In this document: in pieces, positions 10-40,276 of the stretch
How the letters are laid out: each line of letters starts with the position of its first letter
Position numbering within the stretch: position 1 is the first letter of the stretch
NCBI RefSeq assembly: GCF_001194135.2
Contig: NC_068981.1
Location: forward strand, 184,078,955-184,120,423
DNA length: 41,469 bases
Direction of reading: 5' to 3'
Source: Octopus bimaculoides
Lineage: Eukaryota
Notes under the pieces: model-generated
What the model was told of the DNA's origin: nothing
The model's database searches: none
The model's input: the letters and a program-made list of their open reading frames with translations, nothing else
Translations under genes and position numbers: made by a program

Positions 10-313
10 ACCGCCTGACTGGCCTTGTAGGGTTTTCGAGCGAGATCGTTGCCAGTGCCCCTGGACTGGCTCTTGTGTGGGTGGCACATAAAAGACACCA
101 TTTCGAGCGTGGCCGTTTTCGTGTGGGTGACACGTAAAAGCACCCACTACACTCTCTGAGTGGTTGGCGTTAGGAAGGGCATCCAGCTGTAGAAACTCTG
201 CCAAATTAGATTGGAGCCTGGTGTTACCATCCGGTTTCACCAGTCCTCAGTCAAATCGTCCAACCCATGCTAGCATGGAAGGCGGACGTTAAACGATGAT
301 GATGATGATGATG
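10..313 (+). mobile_element. Non-LTR/SINE family 1 with (GAT)n tail
   Basis: Shared core ggttggcgttaggaagggcatccagctgtagaaac...catgctagcatggaaagcggacgttaaa(gat)n, seen more than 10 times in the window. Confidence 0.85.
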
Positions 314-420
314 AATGTTGTTCTTCAGTTTTGTCTTACACCATCTTTTCCTTTTGTCTTTTTTCCATCTCATCACTTACATCTCCTTGTCTCTCTGTCC
401 GTCTGTCACTTTATGCATCT

Positions 421-910
421 ATTTATCTACCTTCCATCTCTTTATTTGTGTGTCATCTATTTATATATCTATCTAGCCATCCATCCATCTATCTATCTAT
501 CTATCTGTCTATCCCTCTAACTATCCATCTATCCATCCATGCATCTATTTATCTATCTATCTACCCATTTATCCTTTCTATCCATCTATCCTATTTATCT
601 ATCTGGTTATCTATCTATCTATCCATCCATCTATTTATCTGTCTGTCTATCTCTCTATTTATCTATCTATCTATCTTTCTACCCATCTATCCTATTTATC
701 TATCTGGCTATCTATCTATCTATTGATCCATTTATCTACCTTATGTCTCTATGTATCTTACTTGTCTGCCTCTTTACCACTTACCTCTTTATGTTGTTAC
801 CTATTTGTCTATCTGTGTATCTATCTACCAGTCAACCATCTATCTATTTATCTGTGTATTTATCTATCTTTTTATGTATCTATCTGTCTACCATATATTT
901 ATTTATCTGT
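421..910. repeat. Degenerate (TATC/TCTA/CATC)n tetranucleotide array in the intron upstream of the RGS exon
   Basis: Directly visible tandem repeats; source of the spurious YLSI-type ORFs. Confidence 0.95.
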
Positions 911-929
911 CTTTATCCAATTACTGCAG

Positions 930-1096
930 AAGGTTTCAGTATATTTCGAGACTACCTTACTTCTCAATACTGTGATGAAAACTTAGATTTCTGGAAAGCA
1001 GTTGAAGACTTCCGAATCGAACCTGATGACACCCAAATTCGTGCCCGGGCTGGTGCCATTTATAAAAGATTCATCATGAAGGGAGCACCACGTTGT
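930..1096 (+). CDS. RGS-domain gene, penultimate coding exon (xGFSIFRDYLTSQYCDENLDFWKAVEDF...IYKRFIMKGAPRC)
   Basis: Acceptor ttactgcAG at 928-929 and donor GTAAGT at 1097. The translation carries the RGS-box motifs ENLDFW and IYxxFIxxGAP. Upstream exons are outside the window. Confidence 0.93.
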
Positions 1097-1360
1097 GTAA
1101 GTGTCAACTTTTTCTCTTCATTAATAATAGACTCTGAGATTTTTTTTTTTTTGTCTTAATTATTGATAGAATAAGTACTAGGCTTACAAAGAATAAGTCC
1201 TGGGGTTGATTTGCTCGACTAAAAGCAGTGCTCCAGCATGGCCACAGTCAAATGACTGAAACAAGTAAAAGAGTATATATTTATATATAAATCATCTTGT
1301 TTTTCAGTTCTTTATATATTCTCTTTCTATCTCTGTTTCTCTCTTTCTCTTTATTTTCAG

Positions 1361-1525
1361 ATAAATTTGCGCTCAAAAAGTCGTGAAAAACTTGGTGAAC
1401 AGTTGAAAGGCCCAATTACCCGATCTTTCTTCGATGAAATGCAGAAAGAAATTTTAGAAGTTATGCAAAGGGACCCTTATCAGAGGTTCTTGAGATCGGA
1501 GTATTATCGAAACTTATGTACATAG
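1361..1525 (+). CDS. RGS-domain gene, last coding exon (INLRSKSREKLGEQ...FFDEMQKEILEVMQRDPYQRFLRSEYYRNLCT*)
   Basis: Polypyrimidine tract plus ttttcAG at 1359-1360, phase 0 matching the previous exon, RGS motifs xNL and MxxDxYxRFLxS, stop TAG at 1523-1525. Confidence 0.93.
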   Translation: MNLRSKSREKLGEQLKGPITRSFFDEMQKEILEVMQRDPYQRFLRSEYYRNLCT

Positions 1526-2417
1526 ATTCATATGAAGATGGTTGGAGGGGAGGGGGGGGGGCTTACTAATACCACAACTACCATTGTCATCACCACTGTT
1601 AACACTACCATCATTACTACCACCACTAGTTACTATCACTACAACTATTGCCTCCAACACAAACACTAACACTATAAACCAACAAAAGAGCCTCTATGTG
1701 GTATATCAAACTGCTAGAAATAGCAGCTTAATCTCTCTAAATTCCCCATAGCCATAAAAAAAAGGACGGCACATTTGACAATGTAGCCTTAGATGCACAA
1801 TGCCTGAAAACAAAATTGAATGATTATGGCCGGAACACCTTTTGATCATTATTCTGCTCAACTTTAACTGACATACAGCTAAAAACAACTCTCTGCTACT
1901 ATTATTATGATTGCCACTCCCAATATGACCTCTACCACTTCTCTTCTGTCAACCAGTCAAAATATGGCAGTGAACATCACTCTGAATACAATTACCAAAA
2001 CTACTCTGATGCAATAACAAATAGTCTCTATCAACATCACCATTACCATGCTACTACCAAACTACTCCTGGACCAACCAACCAGCCAACCAACCATTCAT
2101 TATGCTGAACAATCACCATCTTCATCATCACCACTACCAACCCCATCGCTATATCTATATCTATATGCTAACACACTGAGTTCGAATTCCACCGAGGTCG
2201 ACTTAGCCTCTCATCCTTTTGGAGTCAATAAAACAAGTACCAGTTGAATACTGTGGATGATGTCATCACTTAGCCCTGTCCCACAAAATCTCAGGCCTTT
2301 TGCCTCTAGTAGAAAGAAATATTACTGCCAACACAAACCAATAAGAGACCCTCTACATAGTCACCCAATCTGCTAGAAATAGCAGTCAAATCACCTTTAA
2401 ATGACATGGTTCTAGAT

Positions 2418-2747
2418 CGGTAGTTCTCAACCTCTTTGATTATTATTTTATTCTGGTATACCCCCATAGCCATTCTATGTTTAAAAACTAGTTTCACAGA
2501 TGCATCTTTCAAAACTCCTATTTTGTTCATCATACAATCACTTGTGTAGTTTGAACTATGTAAAATGTCAGAGAAAGAAACCCAGCTGTTTGTTGCAATT
2601 AACACATCTACAGCAAAACTTTTTTTGTTTTCAATAGATTCTCTAAATACTATTGTGGATCATCAATTTCCTATTTTGCTTGTATGGACCCCCAAAAATC
2701 TTATACAAATTTTCAGAGGCCACATGGTCTCTGGTAGAGAATCACTG
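2418..2747. mobile_element. hAT (Charlie-type) MITE
   Basis: Ends cggtagttctcaacc and ggtagagaatcactg resemble CAGTGGTTCTCAA TIRs. 8-bp TSD ttctagat (2410-2417) / ttctggat (2748-2755). Confidence 0.8.
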
Positions 2748-4571
2748 TTCTGGATAAGATGAAACAATGAGATGTTCACAAAGTGAATGTGTTTGACCAT
2801 CGATATATTTGGTCAAGGCTGACCTGGGGTTAAATAACAGCAACTACAACTACTACCAAAAAAATTATGACTGCAATTACCACTACGGTTTCTTTTTCTA
2901 CTCCCACCATCACCACATGAATTGTACCACCAGCAACAATCATCAGTATTTCCTTTACAACAATATCAACCACTACTAACAGCTATATCCAGTACTCCAT
3001 CTAACATCCTTACAATATGAAGTTCACCACGATCATCATCTTCACTACCTCCTCTACCATCCAACACTTGAATATTTTCAGTTACTTTCTCCATTAATTA
3101 GGTTAATCTGGCCAACCTATTTATTATTTATTATTAATTTAAGCCATCCAATCACTTAATCATTTTAAGCTCATGGATGAAGGTTTAAAATAAAAAAAAA
3201 ACAATTTTCATTTTAACTTGGTCATCAACCAGCTCACTTCATTTTGTGTTGCTAATCTATCGAAAAAGACATGACATCGTATAACCTCATTTTACAGTCC
3301 TTGATAAATCTAAAGTATTGCATTTGTACCTTATTTAACTGAAATGGTTCACACCTCTTACAATGTCTCTTTTATAGCATATGATAGAAAAAAAACCAGA
3401 TTGGAATTAACAACTAATGCAACGTTTCTCAACCAGGGCTCCCTGGAACCCTAGGATTCCACGAGAAAGACTGAGATAAGCTAATGCTAATTTCATGATT
3501 GTAATATTACAATACATGCACAACATTGTTGGTTATTGTAATATAGACATCATCCTATCAGGAAGGGTATCCACTCATAAAACATGGCTTCCAAGGGATC
3601 CCATCGAAATAAAAGGCACAGCAGACATAAAAACAATGATTAGAACTGATATATGCATATATGTCCATTTTTTAACATCCAATGTTTCATGCATAGTTGC
3701 CCCCATCTCCATATCACATTCAGAATTCTCCAGAACCTATCAAGTAATCTTGGACAATTATTGAATGCCTTATAAGATACCCTGCTCAGTTACCAAAACT
3801 AAGCTTGTTTTTGCCTTCTTGACCACCTACTGGACTTCTTTCTAGCAAAGCTCCTTCCCATTGAGTTCCAGAGCTGTTGGAAGCAGATTAATCAAAGGCT
3901 TACTGTAATCTGAGTCTTGCTCCTTAGATTTGTTAGTGAAGGTGTCTCTGAGGTGATAGTTAATCTCACTTTTGGAACAGATGAGTTAGCCCCAACAGTT
4001 GTTTCATAAACCTACAGGGGTTTACCAGAAGGGCAACTCACTACTTGGTTGTTTCCTTTGCTACTCAGTCTGTTTCTTGCAGAAGAAGCTTCACAACTCC
4101 ATCAGAGATTCCTTCTCCTCTTGGAACTACCAATAATCATGGTGGTCATTCTCCGAAAGCAATCAATCAGCATCAACTTTGGCATTGCTTCCAGGGTGGA
4201 ATCAACATCTTTGGCGGGTGGAAACTGAAAAGGTGCCCGTCATGTGTATGTGTGTAGTGAAAAGATACACATACACTTCAAAGAACGATTGTTTTCTTGC
4301 TTCTTACCCTACTTTGATAGTGGCGTTGACCAAAATATCAATCTGTTTCTGTTCCTTTTTCCTTCTTTTTGCTGTACTATTCACCATACACAACTTCTAT
4401 TGTTAACATTTTGTCAATCACTTCTTTGATTTTCTCTACTCGTTGCAACTTCTCTCACTGTCCATCTGTCTGTCCCTTATTCCTCTCATTCCATTTATGC
4501 TGTTTTACCTACAATGTATGTATATATCTATAACAAAATGTTAGCACTAAGCAGTGTTTAGGCATAAGCAA

Positions 4572-4786
4572 AATTTAGTTTAGTTAAAATATGTTTGTGA
4601 CATATTTCAACTGTTAAAAGCAAATTCCACTGCAGTTACCATGGAGAAAATATCTCTCATGGTAATATAGAAAATATTTCTCTTAATATCTCTTTTACCA
4701 TTATATATATTCTCCATGGTAACTGCAATGCATTTGCCTTTTAGCAGTTGAAATATGTCACTAACATATTTTAACTAACCTAAATT
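4572..4786. mobile_element. Fold-back MITE with imperfect inverted arms of roughly 75 bp or more
   Basis: ttagtttagttaaaatatgtttgtgacatatttcaactg... pairs with ...cagttgaaatatgtcactaacatattttaactaacctaa. Confidence 0.8.
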
Positions 4787-7417
4787 GTGTGTGTGTGTGT
4801 GTGTGTGCGTGCATGCATGAAGGCACGTGGCCTAGTGGTTAGGTGTGTTGCACTGACGAACTCACAACCTTATTATCATGAAACCATTAAACCATGCACC
4901 TTCACTAATAACATGTATAACAAGGATTATACTAATTACCAATTATATGAATGAAGTTTAGTATCATAGAAAAACAGATGTAATTAACCATTGCTCTGTT
5001 ATGTTCTGTTGATAATCTTGTTTATATGTAAATGATTAAGTAATACAGTTAATTGGTTTACAGGAAACATGAGTTTAGTTCCCTGAGGCAATATCTATAT
5101 ATGTCTCTACACACACACACACACACACATGTTCTTTCACTTGTTTCAGTCATTGGACGACAGCTACGATGGAACACCATCTTGAACGGTTGAGTCAAAT
5201 CAACTCCTGTGCTTAATTTTAAAATATGGTACTTATTCATCATCTCCTTTGCTAAACTGCTAAATTACAAGGACATAAACAAACCAACACTTGTGAATAA
5301 AGAAAGGGTCTTGAATGTCTCCCCCAAGGTGGCTCAGGGAACCTATCTGAAACATCACAGTTTCTCCTCTCTTCACATGGACCTCAATATTAACAGCAGG
5401 AACACTATAAAATTGTTGAGTGTTTCATTAGTTTGCAGTAATTGAATGAATTAGGAGATATAAATAAAGTGAAGTTTTTGAAGAAAAACACTTTAATTTA
5501 ATCAAACAAAGTGGACAGTAAGAAAATCAAGTTTGTGAGGAAAGAACAAAAACAACAACAAAAGCATTTTCAAAATTAATTTTCCATTAGAATTTCAAAC
5601 AACAAACAGTTTAAAAGAAGAACAAAATGTTTATATTCTGAAGAAGAAAAATTTTGATTGTCAAATCCTGTTAAATATCAGACAAATTATTTCACAACAC
5701 TACAGGGATTTATTGAGCCAGTATAGACAGATGAGAAATAAACCTTCGCTTGGATAAGACATGAGACCATTATACAGTTTTCTCTCAGGCATGGCTTAGT
5801 ACCAATTTTCCAGTTTGGTGGACTGTGGCAATAAATGAATTTTGTATCTACCCAATAGATCCATCTAAAGTGGGTTGTGAACCTACAACACAGTTTTGAT
5901 TCATTAGTTGTTTAGAGTGTATACAGGCCATCTTAGTTTATTATCTGTTATGCAATATCTTTTCTCAGACATATCAGTTGTCTTCTCATATCAGATGTAT
6001 ATTTAATACACAGAATATAACATACAATACCAAAAATATAACATGCAATGCAAATTAGAAGCCTGTCTCTCTCTCTTTATGACTCAATCAGAAGTGGAAT
6101 AGCAGCTCCAATGAGCTTTCATTGCAGAGTTCCCAAGACTTGTCAGACAAAGAAGAGTGGTTTTGATATCCCTAAATCAGTGACACGATTCAAATACTGG
6201 CAACTTAGTGAACAGTAAAAGCTTCTTATAACTTCAAGATTAATATAATGTAATTGTTTATTTTTAGACTGACATTGTAGCGTAGTTGTAAGAAGCCTGA
6301 ACTTATAAAACAGAATATTTTGGTCGAATATGACCGGTTTAATTGCTAAACTGTCAAATTAGGTGAGGGATTAAGGTCTATAATTAAAAGTGCCATAAAC
6401 ACATTAATATTTTGATACCAACCTGTTCAAGACTACCTTTGGTTCTAATGTACAAACTTCCTATTTTAAAGTGATTTAAATTAAAAGCTTCAGTCAAAAT
6501 TTCATGCTAATTTATGCTCCAAACACCAGCTTAATAATGATAATGTATTTTATTCAATTCTTCATTATTTTCAAAATTACTTGAAACAAAGTCAGTGTAT
6601 TTCAACAGAAACATGGCAAAGGAAAGGTTAAGGTTTATTTTTGGCTTCTTCAATTCTTGAGCTGCAAAAGGTTGATTGTCTGTTAATATCTCACATGGAT
6701 CAAGGCGGTAAGTTGGAAGAACAGTTAGCACACAGAGCAAAATGCTTAACAGTATTTCATCTGTCTTTAACATATTAAGTTCAAATGCTGCCGAGGTCAA
6801 CTTTGCCTTTCATCTTTTTGGGTTGATAAATTAAGTATCAGTTGAGCAATGGGGTCAATGTAATCAACTTATCCCTTCACTCGAACTTGCTGGCCTTGTG
6901 CCAAAATTTGAAGCCAATATCTCACATGGGTAGGTGCAGGCGTTGATGTGTGCTTAAGAAGCTTGCTTCCAAACCATTTGGTCTTAGGTTCAATCCCACT
7001 GCATAGCTCTTTGAGCAAGTGTCTTCTACTATAGCCCCAGGTCAAGCAAAGTCTTGTGAGTGGATTTGGTAGATGGAAACTAAAAGAAGCCATTGTGTAT
7101 GTATATATGTGTATGTGTACCCTTGTCTTGACTTCATGTAATGGTTGTAAATGAGCATTACCATCAACATGCAAGTGAGGTTGTTCATATCCAGTCTTCT
7201 GTAAAAAAAAAAAAAACATGTCTGGTCAAGGGAAAATATTACTTTGGTTGGAAATAGGTGAGTTGTTGACAGGAAGAGCATCCAGCTGTAGAAAATGTGC
7301 ATCAACAAGTTCTGTCTGCTTCATGCAAGCATGGAAAATTGGATGTAGAATGATGATGATGATGATGATAAAGATGATGACAGTGACAATGACGAATACC
7401 AGCTGCCATGGTTATTT

Positions 7418-7620
7418 TCATACAATTACTCCAGAAGCGCCAGAAATATCTGATGTAATAAATGATTCAAGACTCCCACTTCGGTAACTGAGAATGCGTT
7501 GCTCTATCAAAGTCTTCCAGGTATACTTCTGTTCAATATTAGGCGCTCGGAACATCAATTTCTTTAAAGAAGCCAAAGTTTTGTCCGAAGAACACATTAC
7601 ATGAAGAAGGAAGTCTGTAG
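7418..7620 (-). CDS. GEF exon 17, PH end and C-terminus (TDFLLHV...FRAPNIEQKYTWKTLIEQRI...SGVIV*)
   Basis: Acceptor ttttcacttAG, phase 1. F.A.....K..W...I PH terminal helix. Stop TGA at 7420-7418. Confidence 0.92.
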
Positions 7621-8380
7621 CTAAGTGAAAAGAGAAAGAAAAATTGAAGGAATTGATATGAAAAATGTAAATTCAAAACAGGAAGCAGAAAATGTACAAT
7701 ACTGATTTCAAATTTTGGCACAAGTCCAGCAATTTCAAAGATAAGCACCATTTGAGTGTGGTCGATACCAGTGCCGCCTGACTGGCTCCTGTGCTGGTGG
7801 CACATAAAAAGCATCATTTGAGCATGGTTGATGCCAGTGCTGCCTAACTGGTCCCCATGCCGGTGGCACGTAAAAAGCACCCACTACACTCTGGGAGTGG
7901 TTGGCATTAGGAAGGGCATCCAGCTGTAGAAACCTTGCCATATCAGATTGGAGCCTGCTGCAGCCTACCAGCTTGCCAGTCCTCAGTCAAACTGTCCAAC
8001 CCATGCTAGCATGGAAAGCAGAAATTAAACAATGATGATGATGATGATGATATTAAATCCAGGGATCAACGTTAAGACAGACAAAATGCTGCTAAACATT
8101 TTGTCAGGCATGCTAACAATTCTCCCAGCTTGCTGCCCTAAAAAAACATAGAATAATAACTAAACAGCTGCTAGGAGCTCAATCCTTGAATGTTGGGTCT
8201 CATGGAGGTGAGGTCAAGTGACCGAGACCTTTAGCAATATGCTGTGCTTGAGAAGACTTTTCAAGCCAAGTGAAATCATAGTCGCAGCCGTTGCCAGTGT
8301 CATGTAAATGGCACCTATGCCAGTGGCAACAGCAGCTGTTGCTGCTACTACTACTACTGCTGCTGCTAGTAGTAGTAGTA

Positions 8381-8433
<53 letters not shown>

Positions 8434-11400
8434 CCTACACAATACACTTTCAATACAGTAACCATAAGAGCATCACAGCAAACCACAGCACATACCCAAG
8501 GCACACAGAGCTGCGCTCGGTAGTGTAGTGAAAGCACGCTATAAAAATAAAACTACTGAATAAAAAAAAAAAATAATAACAATAACAATAATAATAATAA
8601 GTAAGAAAGATGTTTATTTAAAATCTAGTTCACTCACCATGCTTTCTCTGAGATTCGATTCCTTGCAAAGAATACAACATGAGTGGACTCTCCACAACTG
8701 TCAATCTATCATCAGCAGATTTCTCAGTTTGTAAGAGGAGATCAGAAAATAACATCAACTGCAACTGCAAGACATAAAAACATCATTACAAACAAACCAT
8801 ACAGAAAAACAAAACATATAAACGAAAACATCCAGTTCTGAATGAACAGATAAGGTTCAGCAGTTCATTTGTTATTTAATTCATGGGGTTGTGTCTTAAC
8901 CCTTTGAGCCCTGACCTCCTGAACCCTATTTGACCATATAGCTGGCTTCCAGATGCACTCCACTGGTAGAGCAGTGCTACGGTATAGAGAAAAATAAGTC
9001 ATCCACAGGTAAGCCGGTGTTACGAGCTCAAAGGGTTAATTGAAGTGGGATAACTTGTCATTTTAGACATCGTATATTATATAGTAAAAGGAATGGTTGT
9101 GTGGTGAAGAAACTCACTTTGCAACCATGATGTTTTGGGTTCAGTCCCACCTGCACAGCACCTTGGGTAAGTGCCTTCTACTATAGCCCCAGGCCAACCA
9201 AAGTCATGCGAGTAAATTTAGTAGACAGGAACTGTGTGAAAGCCCACACTCTCTTTCTCTCCATCTGTATGGCACTTACCCATCAATTAATAACCAGTGT
9301 TGGTTCGCCGGACTGGCCCTCATGCCGGTGGCACGTAAAAAGCACCCACTACACTCTAGGAGTGGTTGGCGTTAGGAAGGGCATTCAACTGTAGAAACTC
9401 TGCTAGATCAGATTGGAGTGTGGTGTAGCCATCTGGTTTGCCAGTCCCCAGTCAAATTGTCCAACCCATGCTAGCATGGAAAGCGAACGTTAAATGACGA
9501 TGATGATGATGATCTATGTCCCTGTAATTTATGTACCAGACTTTAAAAAAAAATGTACTGGGGTTGATTTGTGCAGCTAAACCCTTCAAGGCAGTTCCCC
9601 AACAAGGACACAATCCAACAACAAGTAAAATAAAAAAAAACATTACATGTTCAAACTCACCTTGTTCCAAACATCTCCATCCCACCTGAAAATCTCACCT
9701 GAATAAATGAGATGTCTTTCTTCCTGACACAACTGGAAATACTACAAAGAAAGAATAAATACCATATATTAACTCTTTAGCATTCAGTTTACTCTTTCAA
9801 ATGTAATGCTTCTTTATTCACATTCTCTTGAATTAAACATGCATTCTGGCATAGCTTTTGAGATTGAGATGTAACTGTTTTTAGAATGATATTGTAGGGT
9901 AGGTGTGAGAGGCTGAATCTGACCAGTGTTGATATAAATGGGTAGAATATTTGAGCCAAATATGGCTGGTTTAAATGCTAAAGGGTTAATGATGTCATTC
10001 TGTTCCAGCATGGCTACAGCTAACTGGAAGTGGAACTACTAAAAGACTGATTATCTCTTATGTTATAGATAAATATATATGTACTTCACACCATCACATT
10101 CAGTAAACAGTTTTGTAGAGTGAAATGCAACGTACTCAACAAGATTAAATCAAAAATCCATCATACGTCTATTTATGTAATTAATGCTGAAATGCTACAC
10201 TGCATTATCTTAAAAAAAAAAAAAAATGAGAACACTTAGATGTTGTGGTCTTAGATAAATTACCCCACCAATAAAGGATGGGTCTGTCACAGATAGAATG
10301 GTGTTTGTGCCACAAAGACAAAAAAAAAAAAAGAAAGGATACTCTGTAAAGTGGTCAGCATAAAAAAGGGCAACCAGCCTTAGAAACCTTGCCAAAACAG
10401 ATACAGGAGACCAATGCAGCTCACAGGTTATTTGGATCCAGCTAACAGTCTAACCCATGCCAGCATGAAATATGGGAATGTTAAATGATGATGATGATGA
10501 TGTGCACGCATGCACGCACACACACCATCATCATTTAACATCCATTGTCCATGCTGGCAAGAGTTGGTCAGTTTGACTGGGCTAGCACACTGGAAGGCTG
10601 CATCAGACTCCAGTCTGATTTGGCATGGTTTTTTTACAGCTGGATGCCCTTCCTAACGCCAACCACTCTGAGAGTGTAATGGGTGCTTTTACATGCCACT
10701 GGCACGGGTGCCATTTGCATGACACCGGGGTGTTTTTACGTGCCAATTTGTGTGACTCTGGTATCTGCCACGACTGCGATTTTGCTTGGTTTGATGGGGC
10801 TTCTTCTCAAGCACAACATAACACCAAAGGTCTCAGTCATTGCCTCCATGAGGCCCAACACTCGAAAAGAACTCAGCCATTTTGCCTCTGTGAGGTCCAA
10901 CACAAAGTATTAATTTCTTACATAGCTATAATGTCGCCTGTTTTTAAAGAGTTAACAAAAAGTTATATTAGGATCTTCATGTCTTTCTTAAAGTTATTAG
11001 AGTGATGTACTTCAGATAAAAATAAAAACATGGAATTAAAATCAGATAACAAATTCAGCCACTGAAGCTAACTTTTAACCTTTAACCCTTTCTTGCTTCA
11101 AATGTTGAGAGTTTGTGCCCAGCGTCGCTTTTCTGGCACTTGTGCCTGCGACATGTGCCTGCGAATTTGTTGCCAGTCCCCTAGACTGGCTCTTGTGCGG
11201 GTGGCACATAAAATACACCATTTTAAGCGTGGCCGTTGCCAGTACCGCCTGACTGGCCTTTGTGCTGGTGGCACGTAAAAGCACCCACTACACTCTCAGA
11301 GTGGTTGGCGTTAGGAAGGGCATCCAGCTGTAGAAACTCTGCCAAATCAGATTGGAGCCTGGTGCAGCCATCTGGTTTCACCAGTCCTCAGTCAAATCGT

Positions 11401-13490
11401 CCAACCCATGCTAGCATGGAAAGCGGATGTTAAACGACGATGATGATGATGAAAATGAAAATTCGGAAACTAACTTACCGGAACAGTGTTTGGGAAATAC
11501 AATTTTTTCTGAATACTTGACAGTTGCGAATCTACAGAATGACCAGAATCTTCAGAACAGTTTGATGAAGTTTGTCCAAGATTTGACTTGGATGGTTTGA
11601 GATTCCGTATGTACGATATTGATGCTTGCTCTTTCTTCACACAGACAGTATTTGAAACTTGCAATTTCCCTTCGTAATGGAAGTTTCTTGAAACGCTTAC
11701 TGCACACGTTGAGGATTTGAGTCTCTTGGAAGGATTGCCATCGAAGACTGCAGAGGAAACACCTGAGTGACTGGAATTGGTGTAAGAACTTAGAGAACTG
11801 TTAGACATTGATGATGAATGTGATGAAGATGAGGATGATGATGCCAGCTTTTGAGCCCTGATACACGTGTAATTAGTGATATAAGTCGCACAGAGTTGGA
11901 GACCTAAAACAGAAATAAATTGAGAAGATGAACTTCAGAACAAAACATATAACAGTAATTTTCAGTCAAACAAGATTTAGTGCTTTTATCTTTGATTTTT
12001 TTTTTACTTGTTTCAGTCATTAGACTGTGGCCATGCTGAGAGTAGTGGAAGAATTGAACTCGATGGCTATTTCTGACATATTTAACCATCAACAAAATGG
12101 TAAAACAGAACCATGATTAAACTTACCCTCAACAACCAGTTTCAGGTTCAAGTAGTCAGAATCCTCTTGTGGGGTGTTGCAAAATATCTCCCTAAGTGTT
12201 TGGTACATCTCTTTGATATGCTGCAATATGAAAGTAGAAAGTCCCATGGTGAATAAGATATACAGACATACAAATATATACATTATTTACATTTGATGGA
12301 TATTTGTCCTCATCTTGTTTGTTGTTAACACAACGTTTCGGCTGATATACCCTCCAGTCTTCATCAGGTGTCTTGGGGAAATTTCAAACCTGGGTTCTCA
12401 TTCCTAAGGTGTTGTTGTTGTTGTTATTGTTATTATTATTGTTGTTATCATCACATCACCATCACCACCGCCACCATTATTCAGGTCACTGCCTGGAATC
12501 AAACTCGGAATCTTGAGGTTAGTAGCCCGCGCTCTTAACCACTATGCCATATGCCCATGGGCATAATGTACATAATTCCTCATCTCTTAAATATAAAACT
12601 GTATCACATATATACATGTTGCCATGGAGGAGAATTTTCCCAAGACTAATTCCGTAGGGAAAGGTCTTCCCATGGTCAAATGTACTCAAACATGTTAAAA
12701 GTAACTTTACATGAATACATTTTATTCAATGCTGCTTTGTGCAACTTTATTTATTTAAATCTAACTTCATCAAGCTTTATGCATATCAGAAAACATACTG
12801 TTTGCTGTTGTTGTTCAAAATGAATTGTTCATTTTGGGCTGTGAAAGGTAGATTTTATGTTCATAGATGATGATGCAAAAAAAAAAAACCCCCAAAAAAA
12901 CAGTAAGATACATGTGTCCTGCGAGCCAATGTTATCATTCACAACCAATGTGTTTCCATACATGTTGTTTAGAATTTTCTCCCAAGACTATTTCAGCACC
13001 AAAAAGTCTTCCCATGTCCAAGTGCAGTTAAGACTTTAAATATGACTTCACATGAATACACTTTATTCAATGCTGCTTCATGTGACTTTATAAATACATA
13101 ATCTAAATTATAAGCAAAAGGTACAAGATAAGGGTAATTATATCAAATACCACGTTCACCTCATTAAATCAAGAATCAGCTTTGAAGTGATGTCATTTTC
13201 AGTCTCCTGTGAAAATATATCTGGCTGTTGTACTGTTTTGTATTCAAAAGACGAGAGGGAAATATTACCCTGCTTGGAAACAGGTGAGCGATGACAAGAA
13301 GAAGAGCATCAGGCAGCAGAAAAATCTGCTTTAATTAATATTGCCTGATCGATCCAGGCAAGGTTAGAAAAGTGGATGTTAAAAATGATGATGTCACAGG
13401 TACACACGTCATTATCATTTAACATTCACTTAGCCCCAAGATTCCGAGTTCGATTCCAGGCAGTGACCTGAACAACAACAACAGCAACAA

Positions 13491-14558: not shown

Positions 14559-15951
14559 ACAGCAACAACAACAACAACCCTTTCTACTATAGGCACAAGG
14601 CCTGAAATTTGAAGGGAGTGGGTAAGTCAATTACATCAACATTAATGATTAACTGGTACTTAATTCATTGACCCCGAAGAGATGAAAGGCAAAGTCAACC
14701 TTGGCGGAATTTAAATTCAGATGAAATACCTGAGTATTTTGCCCAGCATGCTAATGATTCTGCCAGCTTCCCGCCTTAATAATAATCATTTCAAATTTTG
14801 CCATAAGGGCAGCCATTTTGGTGGGAGGCGACTAGTCGATTACATCGACCTCAGTGTTTTACTGGTACTTAATTTATTGACCCCGAAAGGATGAAAGGCA
14901 AAGTCGACTTTGGTGGAAATTGAACACAGAATGTAGCGACAGGCAAAATACTGCTAAGCATTGTTAATAATAATAACAATCCTTTCTACNNNNNNNNNNN
15001 NNNNNNNNNNNNNNNNNNNNNNNNNNNNNNNNNNNNNNNNNNNNNNNNNNNNNNNNNNNNNNNNNNNNNNNNNNNNNNNNNNNNNNNNNNNNNNNNNNNN
15101 NNNNNNNNNNNNNNNNNNNNNNNNNNNNNNNNNNNNNNNNNNNNNNNNNNNNNNNNNNNNNNNNNNNNNNNNNNNNNNNNNNNNNNNNNNNNNNNNNNNN
15201 NNNNNNNNNNNNNNNNNNNNNNNNNNNNNNNNNNNNNNNNNNNNNNNNNNNNNNNNNNNNNNNNNNNNNNNNNNNNNNNNNNNNNNNNNNNNNNNNNNNN
15301 NNNNNNNNNNNNNNNNNNNNNNNNNNNNNNNNNNNNNNNNNNNNNNNNNNNNNNNNNNNNNNNNNNNNNNNNNNNNNNNNNNNNNNNNNNNNNNNNNNNN
15401 NNNNNNNNNNNNNNNNNNNNNNNNNNNNNNNNNNNNNNNNNNNNNNNNNNNNNNNNNNNNNNNNNNNNNNNNNNNNNNNNNNNNNNNNNNNNNNNNNNNN
15501 NNNNNNNNNNNNNNNNNNNNNNNNNNNNNNNNNNNNNNNNNNNNNNNNNNNNNNNNNNNNNNNNNNNNNNNNNNNNNNNNNNNNNNNNNNNNNNNNNNNN
15601 NNNNNNNNNNNNNNNNNNNNNNNNNNNNNNNNNNNNNNNNNNNNNNNNNNNNNNNNNNNNNNNNNNNNNNNNNNNNNNNNNNNNNNNNNNNNNNNNNNNN
15701 NNNNNNNNNNNNNNNAGCAGGCGCATTTGATATGATAAAGAAATATTCAGACAAATACATAACAAAAACACCAGGACTAACAAGTATATATAACATACAG
15801 AAAATTGCACTACTGGGCACTGCACACATCCTACGCAAAACACTTTCAATACAGTAACCATAAGAGCATCACAGCAAACCACAGCACATACCCAAGGCAC
15901 ACAGAGCTGCGCTCGATAGTGAAGTGAAAGCATGCTATAAAAATAAAACTA

Positions 15952-17127: not shown

Positions 17128-19387
17128 TACGACGGGTTTCTTTCTGTTTCCGTCTACCAAATCCACTAACAAGGCTTTGGTCGGCCTGAGGCTATAGTAG
17201 AAAACACTTGCCCAAGGTGCCACACAGTAGGACTGAACCCAGAACGATGTGGTCGGTAAGCAAGCTACTTACCACACAGCCACTTCTGCGCCTATATAGA
17301 CTATCAGTATCAATTCTGACACTTACATTGCAAATAGCCAGTGGGCTTATTAAAAAAATCCTTGCAAGCAGAAGTGACCAAAATGGGGGTTTCTTCAAAG
17401 GATCTGTGGAGTGATGTTACTTGACAAGGTGTACAGCTCAGAGAACAGAGAACCTAACCATACCAAACCACACCTTCTCAGCAATGAAAGGTCAAAGCTC
17501 CAGTATAATGGAGATGTCACAGGAAAGAATCACAAGACAGATTCTTCAAGCTGACCAGCAGGCAGGAGTCCTAGACACAGACTACAAATAAGATGGTTGG
17601 ATATGGTTGTTGTCATTTAACGTCCACTTTCAATGCTGGCATGGGTTGGACAGTTTGACATGTTGCTCTCCAGACTCCAGCTATCTGTTATGGCATGGTT
17701 TCTATGGCTGGATTCCCTTCCTTTCTTGATGCCAATCACTTAACAGAGGGTGCTGTGTGCTTTTTACATGTCACTGCACAGGTACATGAATGCTTTTTAA
17801 GTGATACCAGCACCGGAAAACCCAAGCCTGTGTGGAAGGCAGTGATTGTCTTAATTGGTCATGCTTAAGAATCCAGTTGGAAAGTATATTAATGGTCACT
17901 TCTCAGGCACCTCCACCACTGGGTCCTATCAGCGGTGGTGTCTGAGGACTACCCCAAAGACCCAGTGGTGGAGGTGTCTGAGGACTACCTCAAGGACCCA
18001 GTAGTGGAAGTGACTGAGGACTACCCCAAGGACCCAATGGTGGAGGTGCCTGAGGACTACCCCACAACCCTTTCAAGAGTAGTAAGCAGAGAGAAGAATG
18101 AATGGATGAAGATATAGCAGGAAAATCTCACTCCAAACCTTACCCTACCATTAAAAGAAAACATTGGACAATGTAATCCTGGATATACAATGTCTGGTAA
18201 AAAAAAAAAAAAAAAAACAGTCCAAAGTGGGACACATTTAAAGAGTATGCTCTGACATCTCATTGTCACCATCCTTGTCTTTCCTCCAGCCACTCCCACC
18301 TACCCTTATATAATGTGGGGTAACCATGTATCTCCTTTATAGCAAGATACCAGTGTCTATCCCTCTATCATACGTTAACCTCTCCACACTTCCCTCTCTT
18401 CTATGACTGCACTCAGTCAAGGGAGCTTTCCCTTTGTCTTTAGAGTTACTTGGCAAACTCACTGGCGCTAATATGGGAGGGAGGGGGAGATCCCACCCAG
18501 TTCGTCTGTAAAGCGGTTGGCATTGATAAGTAGAGTGAAAGGCAACGAGCTGGCAGAATCGCTACCACACTGGGCGAAATACTTAGTAGTATTTTGTCTG
18601 CTGTTACGTTCTGAGTTCAAATTCCAGCGAGGTCGACTTTGCCTTTAATCCTTTCAGGGTCAATAAATTAAGTACCAGTTGAGTAGTGGGGTCAATGTAA
18701 TCAACTATCCCCCTCTCCAAAATTTCAGGCCTTGTGCCTATAGTAGAAAGGATTAATAAGTAGAGTGGAATTTATTAAAGCCTCTATGAGGTTGCTTGAT
18801 CAGCTACAAACAGCAACAAAATCCTCTTCATATCAACACCCTACTATATCAAGAAAGGGACACATTGGATAATGAATCTTTTACTTTTTTATCTTTAACG
18901 TGTTTCAGTCATTAGACTGTGACCATGCTGGGGCACTGCCTTGAAGAATTTTTAGTCAAATGAATCGACCCCAGTACTTACTTTATTTTTAAAAAGCCTG
19001 GTTCTTATCCTATCGGTAACTTTTGTCAAACTACTAAGTTATGGGGACTTAAACACACCAACACTAGTTAAGCAGCGGTGGGGGACCAAACACTGAGACA
19101 CGCGTGCGACAGGCTTTCTTCAGCTTTTGTCAACCAAATCCACTCACAAGGCTTTGGTTGGCTTGAGACAATTGTAGATGATGCTTGAGTTGCCACATAG
19201 TGGAACCTTGGGCAAATGTGCCTGAAAAAATGAGATGGCCATAGTTGGAACATCTTTAGCAGTAAGCCTGTTTGATCAGGACTTATATGTGGTTGTGCAA
19301 CAACATAGAACCAACAATGGCTACAACATAAAAATACAGCAACAATATCAAAGTATTATGAACAATAGCAACACCACCACCACCACC

Positions 19388-21320: not shown

Positions 21321-24266
21321 GGATGGATGTATTCACACACATATTAGAATTTTTAGCAAAATTATACAATATATCAAGATCAAGGATTTGATTAAATAGT
21401 GAATAGTTTTCTATATGAACTACTGTTCAAATTGTTATCTATAAATACAGAATGATTTCAAACTGTATTCAGATTAAATCTACCCTCCATCCTCCTGGAT
21501 TGATAAAGTAAAGTGCCAGTTAAGTACAGTACAGTCAGATGTCATTCATGAGCAAATATGACTTCGTAACATGTACCACAGTTTTGTTAATTGTTTCAGA
21601 TGTCTATGTAACCACAAGTAGACCAAGATAAGCTCTTAGCCCCTTCACTCTTCACCTAACAGAATATCTAGGACATGACAGATAGAGAGAGAGAGAAGGA
21701 CTGCACTAGCAAGAGAAAACTGGAGTATCATGAAATGAAGATCTTTGCTCAAGGATACAATGTGCCACCCAACTTGGAGATTGAATCCACAATCTTGTGA
21801 TATGAGCTGAACACCCCAATGACTAGACCAAGTACCTCCACACCAGTCAATTACTGGGTAGACTTTATATATACTCCAACCCCAAAATTTGTGCAATGTT
21901 AGAATTTAATAAATATAGAATGTAAAGCACTGACCTTTTCAATATTTTGGAAGAGTTCTGTGTGTTGTTTTTGACTGATAATACAATGCCGTAATGGACG
22001 AGAGTATTGCTCAATACCTCCATGCATAAAATCGATATATTCTCGTTCCAAATCAACCAATTGTTGGATTGCTGCTGCCCTACTTTCTGACGTATCTGGC
22101 TTTGTTAACTGCAACACACACACACATACATGGAAATATAACATCATACATTACACATTATGGTATTTACTTCAATATATACAGATACATCATCAGCTTA
22201 CATCCCCCGCTTACTTTGTATCCTTACACTCACCTCTCTCCATCCATAATTTTCATCTCTTCCTCTCTTATAGCTTCCCCCACCTATCTCTTCTATTACA
22301 CATCTATCCTCATTTATCACAGGGATTTGGTTCCAAAAATACAGTGATAAATGAATCATATCCATGTACTTTCTAAATGAAACAAATGATTCATTGAAAC
22401 CAAACTCATGGCTCATAGCAGCAAATCTTCTACCAACATGTATTCTCTTGACCATGCCTGCCTTTTTGTGAAGAGCAGTGGTTCTCGACTGGGGTTCATA
22501 TTGCTCTTGGGGATCCATATAAGATTTTGTTGTTAAAATTTATGTGCAATTTATGTGTATTTTCAATACATAAAATATTTCAACAATTTTTTAATACAAT
22601 TCCAAACAATACAGGGTCCACCATAAGTAACTATATATTTTCTTTTGCTTGTAACTTTGTTGATACTTATTCAATTTTTCTATTTCATATGTCATTTGAA
22701 ACTGAAATCTTATATTTCTATTTCTTTTTTTCCCCCCTTACTATATTCACCCTTACAATGTAGGATAGCCCTGGACCCCACCCCTAATACAACCTACCCC
22801 ATTACCTCTCGACTGTGTTATTGTTTACTCTTTTACTCTCCACTACCACCCTGTTACAACCATACATCTGTTCCTCTTATCTTACCATTTCTCTTTACCC
22901 TGTCTAGAATTATTGTACCCTTTCTTTTCTATCACCCCCCCCCCCCGTTAAAGGGGCCACTTTAGGCCCTTAGCCTTGCAAGTTAGAAAAATGATCTTCA
23001 CTAGTATCATGCAATGAAAAAAGCACCAGATACTTTTCCTAAAGAGGTAGGCATTAAGAAGCGTCACCCAACCACAGAAACCATACGAAAGTAAGCAATG
23101 GAGTATGAAGCAGTTCTTTAATTCACCAGATCCTGTTGAACCGTCCAACCTATGCCAGCATGGAAGACAGAGGTGGGTGGTGGTGGTTATGGTGATGAGG
23201 ATGATGTGTGTAAGTGTGTATAACTGTTGAAGAATTCCCTATTTTTTCCTTTTTGAGAGCTGATCTGTTACATGCCAAAGTATGTGCCAAGCATATACTG
23301 CAACATATGAAAATAGGGACAATATATTTTCACCTGACACTGTGGCACATCTGAGCACTGCAGAGAATAAGCTAATCATTATCATTAATTATGTTCTAAA
23401 TTCTGCCGAAGTTGACTTTGCTTTTTATCCTTCTGGGGTCAATCAATTAAGTACCAGTCAAGTACTGGGGTCGATGTGATCAATTGTCCCCCTCCCCACA
23501 AAAATGCAGGCCTTGTGCCTATAGTAGAAAGGATTATGTTCTTAATGGATGGGTCTCCGTCATTTGACAAGATTCAGGTGTCCAATCAACTGGTTCCTTG
23601 GTCTTTTAATTAACATGTAAATGACAGCATTTTACAAACAGGTGTCCTTACCATAATTCTCAGACAGAATCAACATGGCACTGTGTGAGAAGGCTGTATA
23701 TTTAAAATCCAGGTAGAACCCATCCAACAGGATTCTATACAATGCCTTGTTGGTGAAATTTGGTAGACAGAACCTGCACACAAGTTAATCATGCATTTGT
23801 GTGTATACATGTTTTACATCTTGATACTTAAGAGTTTGACAAATAGAGATTGATAAAATCAGTACCAGATTTAAAATAAGTACAGAGATCATATAATCTT
23901 TTCTACTCTAGGCACAAGGCCTGAACATTTTTNNNNNNNNNNGGGGGGGGCTAGTCGATTAGATCGACCCCAGTAGGCAACTGGCACTTAATTTATTAAC
24001 CCCGAAAGGATGAAAGGCAAAGTCGACCTCGGTGGAATTTGAACTCAGAAAGTAAAGACAGATGAAATACCGCTAAGCATTTCACCTGGCATGCTAACAA
24101 TTCTGCTAGCTCGCCACCTTACAGAGATCATATAACGAACTAAAACCATGAAGGCATGGCCCGAGAATGGTCACAATCTAATGACTGAAACCAGTAAAAG
24201 AATAAAAGTGTATGTGTGTGTGTGTATACACACACACACACACACAAACACATATTACATTACATC

Positions 24267-39300: not shown

Positions 39301-40276
39301 CCAGCTGTAGAAACTCTGCCAAATTAGACTGGAGCCTGGTGTTGCCATCCGGTTTCACCAGTCCTCAGTCAAATCGTCCAACCCATGCTAGCATGGAAAG
39401 CGGACGTTAAACGATGATGATGATGATGATGATACTAGTCTATTTATCACATACAGTAATATTTACTAGTTAGACTGGTCTATGTCATACCATACAGTAA
39501 CAGTAGTTAGACTACCCTATATGCCACATCATACAGTAATGTTTAGAATGGACTATATACTTTTTAATTAAACTGGCCTCTGGCATAACATGCAATAATA
39601 CTTACTAGTTAGACTGGTCTATATGCCACACTGATATCATGAGACGTTTACTGATGTCATCTTGCAACAATTCACTGAAAATAGAAAACATTATTTTATG
39701 AGAAAAAGTGTGGAAGCATTACAATCATAATTATACATGTAAAAAATATTCACCAAAGGAGAATCAGAATTAATGATTTGGATTTCTTTGACCTGTTTCT
39801 ATGAAAACAGTTATAAAAAATATTGATGATATGAGAAGCCCACACTGTTATATCATCAAACATCAAAGAGGTGCCAAATCTATAAATTCGTACAATGAAG
39901 ATATTTTACGTTTTTGGAATGCCAACATGGATATATAAATGATAGTTGGTGGTGTTTATGGTGCTGCATGGTATTATGCTCTGATACATGCAAACCAGAG
40001 AGTGAGTGGTTTCAAAAGCAGTAAGACATGCTGTAGCAGACTTACCACCAGAAACATTCTCAAGAAAGGAACTGAGCACTATAGGAAATATTTTCCTGAC
40101 TCATAGACAATTGAGTGCACAAGAGGCAGCATTTAAAATGTGTGGTTTACCTCTTAGAGGTTCTTCAAAATGGTCTGCCTTTATCAATACATGTCTAGAA
40201 TATGAAAGAAGTTCACTTGTCATTCCAAAAGCTCAACATTTTGATGAGTGAAGACATTTTGTTCAAATGTTCTCAT

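Follow-up and report, generated by a model that had tools for sequence, protein, structure and literature searches.

We describe a 41,469-nucleotide (nt) stretch of the Octopus bimaculoides genome (chromosome CM046601.1, assembly GCA_001194135.2), referred to below as the window, which contains the 3' halves of two convergently transcribed genes. The first, on the plus strand, encodes a small RGS protein; the second, on the minus strand, encodes a guanine nucleotide exchange factor (GEF) of the PsGEF family. The two genes lie tail to tail, with 5,893 bp from stop to stop and no N run between them; the complete list of N runs in the window is 14990-15715, 23933-23942 and 32635-33245. A first-pass annotation of the same DNA had reported an RGS end at 1525 on the plus strand, a GEF stop at 7418 on the minus strand, a spacing of about 5.9 kb free of sequence gaps, and the domain order C2-PDZ-DH-PH in the minus-strand gene. 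These observations were all confirmed: the N runs all lie to the right of 14990, C2, PDZ and RhoGEF were each recovered by Pfam, and the PH domain was recognized in a structure model. The features of the locus are collected in Table 1.

Table 1. Coordinates of genes, transcript ends and repeats in the window, with the evidence for each.
Feature	Position	Strand	Evidence and remarks
RGS, penultimate coding exon	930-1096	+	residues 54-109 of 163, first half of RGS box; tblastn of P0001, spliced RNA, Pfam RGS
RGS, last coding exon	1361-1525	+	residues 110-163, stop TAG 1523-1525; Asn of INL and DPYQRF; spliced RNA
RGS 3' untranslated region (UTR), minimum ~3.1 kb	1526-4609	+	RNA contigs unbroken from coding exons to 4585 (X3, X5) or 4609 (X7)
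Inverted repeat	4569-4789 (arms 4569-4653, 4705-4789)	.	88% complementarity between arms around a 51-nt loop; then a (GT)n run
GEF 3' UTR, ~1.9 kb to likely poly(A) site, possibly on to 4788	7417-5475	-	X26 contigs
GEF, last coding exon, PH end and short tail	7620-7418	-	stop TGA 7420-7418; spliced X26 contig; 97% identical to P0178 residues 752-818
GEF, PH exons	9741-9661, 8764-8638	-	spliced X26 contig; PH strands in P0178 model
GEF, large Ser-rich disordered DH-PH linker exon	11903-11479	-	spliced contigs X26, X17; predicted local distance difference test score (pLDDT) <50
GEF, DH exon	12220-12127	-	tblastn of P0178 and spliced RNA contigs
GEF, DH exons	22108-21935, 19662-19528, 16556-16449, 14382-14323	-	tblastn of P0178, canonical AG/GT
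GEF, PDZ-DH linker exon, acidic, low complexity	28917-28656	-	tblastn of P0178, 84% identity; canonical AG/GT
GEF, PDZ exon	30682-30577	-	loose read end from 33475 straight into 30682; Pfam PDZ
GEF, PDZ exon	33556-33475	-	spliced contigs X25/X17/X26; Pfam PDZ
GEF, C2 and C2-PDZ linker exons	40639-40545, 39674-39606, 37500-37440, 35959-35863, 35352-35297	-	spliced contigs X25/X17/X26, CT..AC joints; Pfam C2
SINE-like repeat copies; LINE open reading frame	126-314, 7743-8051, 9307-9513, 10523-10713, 11170-11458, 39192-39467; 31092-31397		

Structure and products of the two genes

The two RGS exons of the window together matched the Pfam family PF00615 (E=5.6e-31, positions 11-117 of 117). The intron between them (1097-1360) has GT..AG ends, and the splice from 1096 to 1361 was found in RNA contigs of three sequencing runs (X3, X5 and X7); in one run the contig carries a further 158 nt at its upstream end, derived from outside the window. 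The product is 100% identical to XP_014784321.1, a protein of 163 amino acids named "regulator of G-protein signaling 4-like", whose first 53 codons lie left of the window, 5.3 kb and more away. A newer O. bimaculoides model begins at Met49 and comprises 115 amino acids, and is shorter than the older 163-residue model that the RNA supports. The RGS box occupies residues 37-161 of the 163, with a leader of about 50 residues and no other domain, and its coding sequence is interrupted by a phase 1 intron before Glu54 and a phase 0 intron between Cys109 and Ile110.

When aligned to RGS4, the octopus protein was seen to keep the motifs that contact G-alpha, namely DEN (cDENldfw vs. sEENidfw), the Asn of INL (ciNLrs vs. 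evNLds) and D-PYQRF (rDpyqRFl vs. kDsyrRFl). The equivalents of RGS4 Glu87/Asn88, Asn128 and Asp163/Arg167 are conserved in this sequence alignment, in agreement with the first-pass description of the GTPase-activating motifs as intact. With these contact residues in place, the 163-residue protein would be expected to act as a GTPase-activating protein on G-alpha subunits. In all cephalopod copies the EFSEEN motif has Cys where Ser is usual; the octopus protein reads QYCDEN.

The GEF gene has 17 exons in the window, from 40639 down to 7418. Spliced RNA contigs define 11 of the 17, a loose read end supports one more, and the remaining five are based on homology to the O. vulgaris ortholog P0178. 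The resulting model has 744 amino acids and aligns to residues 74-818 of P0178 with 96.2% identity; the coding sequence for the N-terminal ~73 residues, where the C2 domain begins, lies past the right edge of the window, and RNA contigs carry the transcript 540 nt further upstream of 40641. Pfam matches to this model were all above the cut-offs: C2 at residues 7-83 (28.8 bits, covering positions 31-104 of 104), PDZ at 128-200 (37.4 bits) and RhoGEF at 290-475 (67.8 bits, positions 2-179 of 180). The unspliced open reading frame (ORF) stretches of the gene gave only sub-threshold matches to PDZ and RhoGEF.

No Pfam match to a PH domain was obtained with the 744-residue model. In an AlphaFold model of P0178 (22 orthologs), residues 693-797 form seven strands and a C-terminal helix, which is the PH fold, with pLDDT values of 80-93, and a Foldseek search with this model returned DH/PH tandems as its top matches, over 450-490 aligned columns. 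The predicted structure shows that the DH domain is followed by a PH domain.

For the GEF of O. bimaculoides the annotated product has 728 amino acids, with PDZ and RhoGEF as the only domains listed, and its O. vulgaris ortholog has 818 amino acids and a C2 domain; the O. bimaculoides model seems to be truncated or to be short of C2 exons. Several candidate exons were tried and rejected in the course of building the present model. One on the minus strand at 38553-38645, guessed from the resemblance of "GYIGCNPISAV" to RGS3, is skipped by all spliced RNA contigs. This ORF, "GIKHTGYIGCNPISAVHIQEK", has a phase-compatible acceptor and is faintly similar to the true C2 exon at 37500-37440, "VKDHLGSMSFGVLHLMKPNR"; either a decayed copy of an exon or chance could account for it. 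Candidate DH/PH exons at 13179-13334 and 17313-17453 are likewise not used.

Family membership of the exchange factor and the RGS box

Homologs of the GEF, sought with a 592-residue query, were mollusc proteins and one annelid protein, among them Lottia gigantea LOTGIDRAFT_167700 (E=5.9e-134). Of the 37, the best 33 each have PDZ and C2, together with RhoGEF in every case except one; the RGS domain (PF00615) is absent from all 37. By homology and domain order, the octopus gene is orthologous to PsGEF, the exchange factor of protostomes with the architecture C2-PDZ-DH-PH, the link to the fly protein being made through the limpet protein and PMC2684095.

The N-terminal half of PsGEF has a particular affinity to RGS3. 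When the PsGEF family profile was compared with solved structures, the RGS3 C2 domain came out far ahead of every other structure, at 158 bits vs. 85 for PKC-gamma, and the RGS3 PDZ domain, which scored 59-63 bits, was the best PDB match of the PDZ. Judged by these profile scores, the C2-PDZ module of PsGEF is specifically RGS3-like, a likeness already published (PMC2684095), and it shares ancestry with the C2-PDZ of vertebrate RGS3, as is already known. The resemblance of PsGEF to RGS3 was described by Higuchi et al. (2009; PMC2684095), who suggested that RhoGEF exons had been captured in the bilaterian ancestor by a C2-PDZ gene similar to RGS3. The same study reported a genetic interaction of fly PsGEF with Rac1, and Rac-type membrane ruffling caused by its RhoGEF domain in cultured cells. 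By analogy to the fly protein, the one member for which Rac activity is established, octopus PsGEF may also exchange nucleotide on Rac.

Two side observations concern this family in other molluscs. In NCBI and UniRef, "Regulator of G-protein signaling 3" or "RGS3-like" is a widespread name for mollusc PsGEF orthologs (P0178, P0185, P0187, P0189, P0193, P0196 and others); these names are an annotation error, spread from the C2-PDZ similarity to proteins that have no RGS box. Additional shorter PsGEF-like genes (528-607 amino acids, 30-34% identity; P0201-P0209) were found in Mercenaria, Solemya, Sinanodonta, Mya and Ruditapes, and, to judge by their consecutive locus numbers, they may have arisen by local tandem duplication.

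The RGS box was placed in three ways. Against solved structures it scored highest with RGS4 (86 bits), followed by RGS18 (84), RGS2 (83) and RGS1 (82), with RGS3 at 76, RGS16 at 75 and GAIP at 74; RGS3 ranked ninth. The structures of RGS7, RGS10 and RGS17 scored ~72 bits, and members of the RZ, R7 and R12 families 72-74 or lower, so that the margin of R4 over RZ/R7 members is small, at ~10 bits. In a search for relatives of the 163-residue protein among 1.84 billion representative sequences, the closest was a longer cephalopod RGS protein (48% identity), followed by vertebrate RGS4/2/8/13/5/3-like proteins (34-42% identity), which are the nearest named non-cephalopod sequences; fish RGS3 proper, with C2-PDZ-RGS or PDZ-RGS architecture, appeared at about the 100th rank. 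Finally, in a neighbor-joining tree of 128 columns, a single clade with 100% bootstrap support united the RGS neighbor of PsGEF (from Argonauta and three species of Octopus) with the longer cephalopod paralog and an unnamed transcript. Gastropod and flatworm RGS proteins, vertebrate R4 members and fish RGS3 fell into other groups, the fish C2-PDZ-RGS3 proteins forming a clade of their own (100%) apart from that of the cephalopods.

On these comparisons the octopus RGS box is best classed as a member of R4, the class that includes RGS3, and not as RGS3-like in particular. It does not group with RGS3 boxes, either in the PDB ranking or in the tree, which is by neighbor joining only, and the RGS transcript and the annotated products (115-163 amino acids) carry the RGS domain alone, the C2-PDZ being encoded by the gene on the opposite strand. 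The first-pass annotation had seen here an RGS3-like domain set divided between two genes. This description fits the C2-PDZ half, with its 158 vs. 85 bits, and does not fit the RGS box, at 76 vs. 86; the box does come from a family related to RGS3, the R4 class, but a grouping with RGS3 itself did not emerge.

The longer paralog (LOC106872769/LOC115212653) has 404-474 amino acids, with an N-terminal region of ~320 residues, and it aligns with gastropod RGS proteins for ~60 residues past the RGS box, a region that the neighbor of PsGEF does not have. Since the long paralog shares this additional N-terminal homology with gastropod RGS, the neighbor looks like a derived short duplicate. Its identity between Octopus and Argonauta is 48-49%, vs. 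92.9% for the long paralog, and over the same distance the GEF C-terminus retains 70-94% identity (Argonauta locus 43977-46857). Such divergence would mean relaxed or diversifying selection on the neighbor RGS. The simplest reading of these sequence data is that it is a fast-evolving short duplicate, probably arisen within cephalopods.

Conservation of the pair and its converging transcripts

The convergent arrangement was followed in other genomes within 10 kb flanks of PsGEF. As compared to the 5.9 kb of O. bimaculoides, the RGS and PsGEF stops of O. vulgaris are 10,993 bp apart on opposite strands; the DNA of O. sinensis is collinear across RGS and PsGEF up to the end of the fetched flank; and in Argonauta hians an intact, unannotated RGS gene, on the strand opposite to PsGEF, ends 2.8 kb past the PsGEF stop. 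A search for RGS-like exons (tblastn, four RGS queries, E up to 10) gave none within ±10 kb of PsGEF in Argopecten, Liolophura, Haliotis or Lottia, and the downstream neighbor of scallop PsGEF is a Miga gene. An absence from other lineages, which the first-pass annotation had counted against its own reading, is largely what was found: the neighborhood is common to octopods and, within ±10 kb, absent from the scallop, the chiton, the abalone and the limpet.

Between the two converging transcripts lies an inverted repeat with arms of 85 nt, which is missing from the aligned DNA of O. sinensis and O. vulgaris and is probably a species-specific insertion resembling a miniature inverted-repeat transposable element. 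RNA contigs from both genes end at this repeat or at the adjoining (GT)n run, as they might if unrelated contig ends had been misjoined there during assembly. That the junction is such an artefact is, however, hardly credible. Order and orientation are the same in O. sinensis and O. vulgaris, from the RGS exons and UTR through the intergenic DNA to the UTR of the GEF, and Argonauta also has an RGS gene convergent to the GEF. The junction is real because the two Octopus assemblies, which are independent, match in order and orientation; the first-pass contention that scaffolding had not flipped either gene is upheld by the same match.

The RGS 3' UTR is covered at a depth similar to that of the coding sequence: 526 vs. 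567/434 in run X3, 127 vs. 123 in X5 and 141 vs. 132 in X7. Its mapped extent is a lower bound, the contigs stopping inside the inverted repeat. For the GEF, contigs of run X26 cover the UTR from 7380 to 6740 at a depth of ~40 and from 6483 to 5475 at a depth of 16, and an ATTAAA hexamer on the minus strand (5497-5492) lies 17 nt before the contig end at 5475. Contigs of X3, X5 and X7 reach 4788 at a depth equal to that of the GEF introns; this signal could represent pre-mRNA, GEF UTR or read-through from RGS. The mapped ends, 4609 on the plus strand and 5475 or 4788 on the minus strand, lie 180-870 bp apart. The contigs are unstranded and broken at the inverted repeat, and none spans both UTRs; in the raw reads of run X39, coverage of either gene was zero.

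Ends this close raise the question of a functional link, in which overlapping or read-through UTRs, antisense transcription or shared 3' regulation would connect G-protein and Rac signaling, and selection would keep the pair together. Such a link is compatible with an octopod-specific juxtaposition and not mutually exclusive with it. The lengths of the two UTRs (at least 3.1 kb for RGS and at least 1.9 kb for GEF), the 180-870 bp that separate their mapped ends and the retention of the arrangement in four octopod genomes all speak for it; in addition, the runs with high RGS expression cover 4788-6533 and the GEF introns, which RGS read-through could explain. We nevertheless consider it unlikely. 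No contig crosses both UTRs, and the contigs carry no strand and end at an inverted repeat that amounts to an assembly break. A special conservation of the UTRs was considered and rejected, as they are no better conserved than the introns: when O. bimaculoides is compared with O. vulgaris, identity is 85-94% in UTR and intergenic DNA and 81-94% in introns. The spacing between the stops varies from 2.8 to 11 kb among species, and expression of the two genes is not obviously coordinated, run X25 having spliced GEF contigs and not being among the runs with RGS exons.

Several repeats were recorded in passing. A repeat of ~190-300 bp resembling a short interspersed nuclear element (SINE) is present in many copies and in both orientations, in introns and UTRs alike, with RNA contig depths in the tens of thousands. 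An ORF resembling the reverse transcriptase of a long interspersed nuclear element (LINE) lies inside one GEF intron. The intron sequence 5' of the first RGS exon in the window (296-929) consists almost wholly of a degenerate (CTAT/CTGT)n-type microsatellite, which yields long spurious ORFs on the plus strand ("IYLSIYLS...").

Origin of the pair and comparison with known systems

Taken together, we interpret the locus as two ordinary genes of known families whose juxtaposition is specific to octopods or to cephalopods, and give this interpretation a probability of roughly 0.8. It is founded on what is described above, namely how the two genes are built and oriented, their domains, the families to which they belong and the synteny among octopods; for the timing of the juxtaposition and the activities of the two proteins we offer a more conditional account. 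The RGS gene and PsGEF would have come to lie tail to tail within the cephalopod lineage, at some time before Octopus and Argonauta diverged, and would have remained so since. That their domains add up to a set resembling RGS3 is most likely a coincidence.

The first-pass annotation had proposed a different history, either an ancestral linkage that preceded the RGS3 fusion or a fission by inversion, and neither was borne out. Ancestral linkage is unsupported because the RGS box is a generic R4 box, not closest to RGS3, because it belongs to a cephalopod-only clade whose long paralog lies elsewhere, and because the pair is seen in octopods only.

In its fission form, this history would start from a bilaterian C2-PDZ-...-RGS gene that gained DH-PH in protostomes; the RGS exons would then have split off and been inverted, to survive beside PsGEF in cephalopods only. 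We regard this as quite unlikely, even though the C2 and PDZ of PsGEF are specifically RGS3-like and an RGS3-like ancestor has been proposed (PMC2684095), the neighboring RGS belongs to the class that contains RGS3, and the adjacency has been kept since Octopus and Argonauta diverged. RGS exons are missing from the 10 kb around PsGEF in scallop, chiton, abalone and limpet, and the linkage would have to have been lost independently in several lineages. Moreover, the box is no nearer to RGS3 than to other R4 members, and it groups with a cephalopod paralog that has a gastropod-type N-terminal extension, as expected of a recent duplicate placed secondarily.

The other form of this history would take the octopod pair as a trace of the locus at which RGS3 originated. 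A C2-PDZ gene and an R4 RGS gene would have been neighbors in the bilaterian ancestor and fused to RGS3 in vertebrates; in protostomes the C2-PDZ gene would have captured DH-PH, with the RGS gene remaining adjacent, inverted, in cephalopods only. This we hold to be very unlikely.

Certain considerations do weigh against the octopod- or cephalopod-specific juxtaposition that we favor. An RGS gene beside the sole family with an RGS3-type C2-PDZ is a priori unlikely, at ~1 in 1,000 per neighbor by our own rough estimate, and this improbability leaves some room for a historical link. The synteny comparison was confined to 10 kb flanks, with squid, Nautilus, annelid and deuterostome loci outside it, and a looser linkage of PsGEF and RGS (>10 kb) may exist in other molluscs. 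The cephalopod RGS clade also has a long branch, and a shared rate or composition could inflate the appearance of a cephalopod-specific duplication.

Were the neighborhood nevertheless ancestral, it would provide a concrete genomic intermediate for the assembly of RGS3 and for the origin of PsGEF from the same C2-PDZ stem. To our knowledge the question of this common stem, raised in 2009, has never been tested by synteny, and a literature search on RGS3 and invertebrate synteny returned nothing relevant. With the pair read as a juxtaposition within octopods or cephalopods, the practical gain is modest: the PsGEF ortholog of octopus now has a curated gene model, a caution is given that mollusc PsGEF proteins are widely mislabelled "RGS3", and a short RGS paralog, fast-evolving and restricted to cephalopods, has been identified.

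Among known systems, the minus-strand gene is most similar to PsGEF of Drosophila (CG14045/CG43976) and Lottia (LgPsGEF), with which it shares C2, PDZ and DH domains in the same order, the RGS3-like C2-PDZ module and the lack of an RGS domain, and which has orthologs across molluscs and in an annelid. The octopus protein differs in a Ser-rich disordered insert of ~140 residues between the DH domain and a clear PH fold, a PH domain not being described in PMC2684095. The long isoforms of vertebrate RGS3 (C2-PDZ-...-RGS; fish XP_028313670.1) have the C2 and PDZ domains closest to those of the octopus GEF, and an RGS box of the same R4 class as that of its neighbor. In octopus, however, the two halves are separate genes on opposite strands, DH-PH follows the PDZ, and the RGS transcript encodes 163 amino acids only, its box scoring 76 bits with RGS3 vs. 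86 with RGS4 and falling into a separate clade.

The small R4 proteins (RGS1, 2, 4, 5, 8, 13, 16 and 18) are the top sequence matches of the octopus RGS protein and resemble it in its 163-residue size, in the RGS box that extends nearly to the C-terminus and in the conserved G-alpha contact residues. Unlike them, it has a Cys in QYCDEN, is at most 42% identical to any non-cephalopod protein and diverges rapidly within octopods. Its closest relative is the long cephalopod RGS protein, which is 48% identical in the RGS box, belongs to the same clade and is encoded on the same chromosome in O. bimaculoides. The long protein differs in its N-terminal region of ~320 residues, partly common to gastropod RGS, and in being 93% conserved between Octopus and Argonauta; its gene, which ranges over 228 kb, is not beside PsGEF and in Argonauta lies on a different contig.

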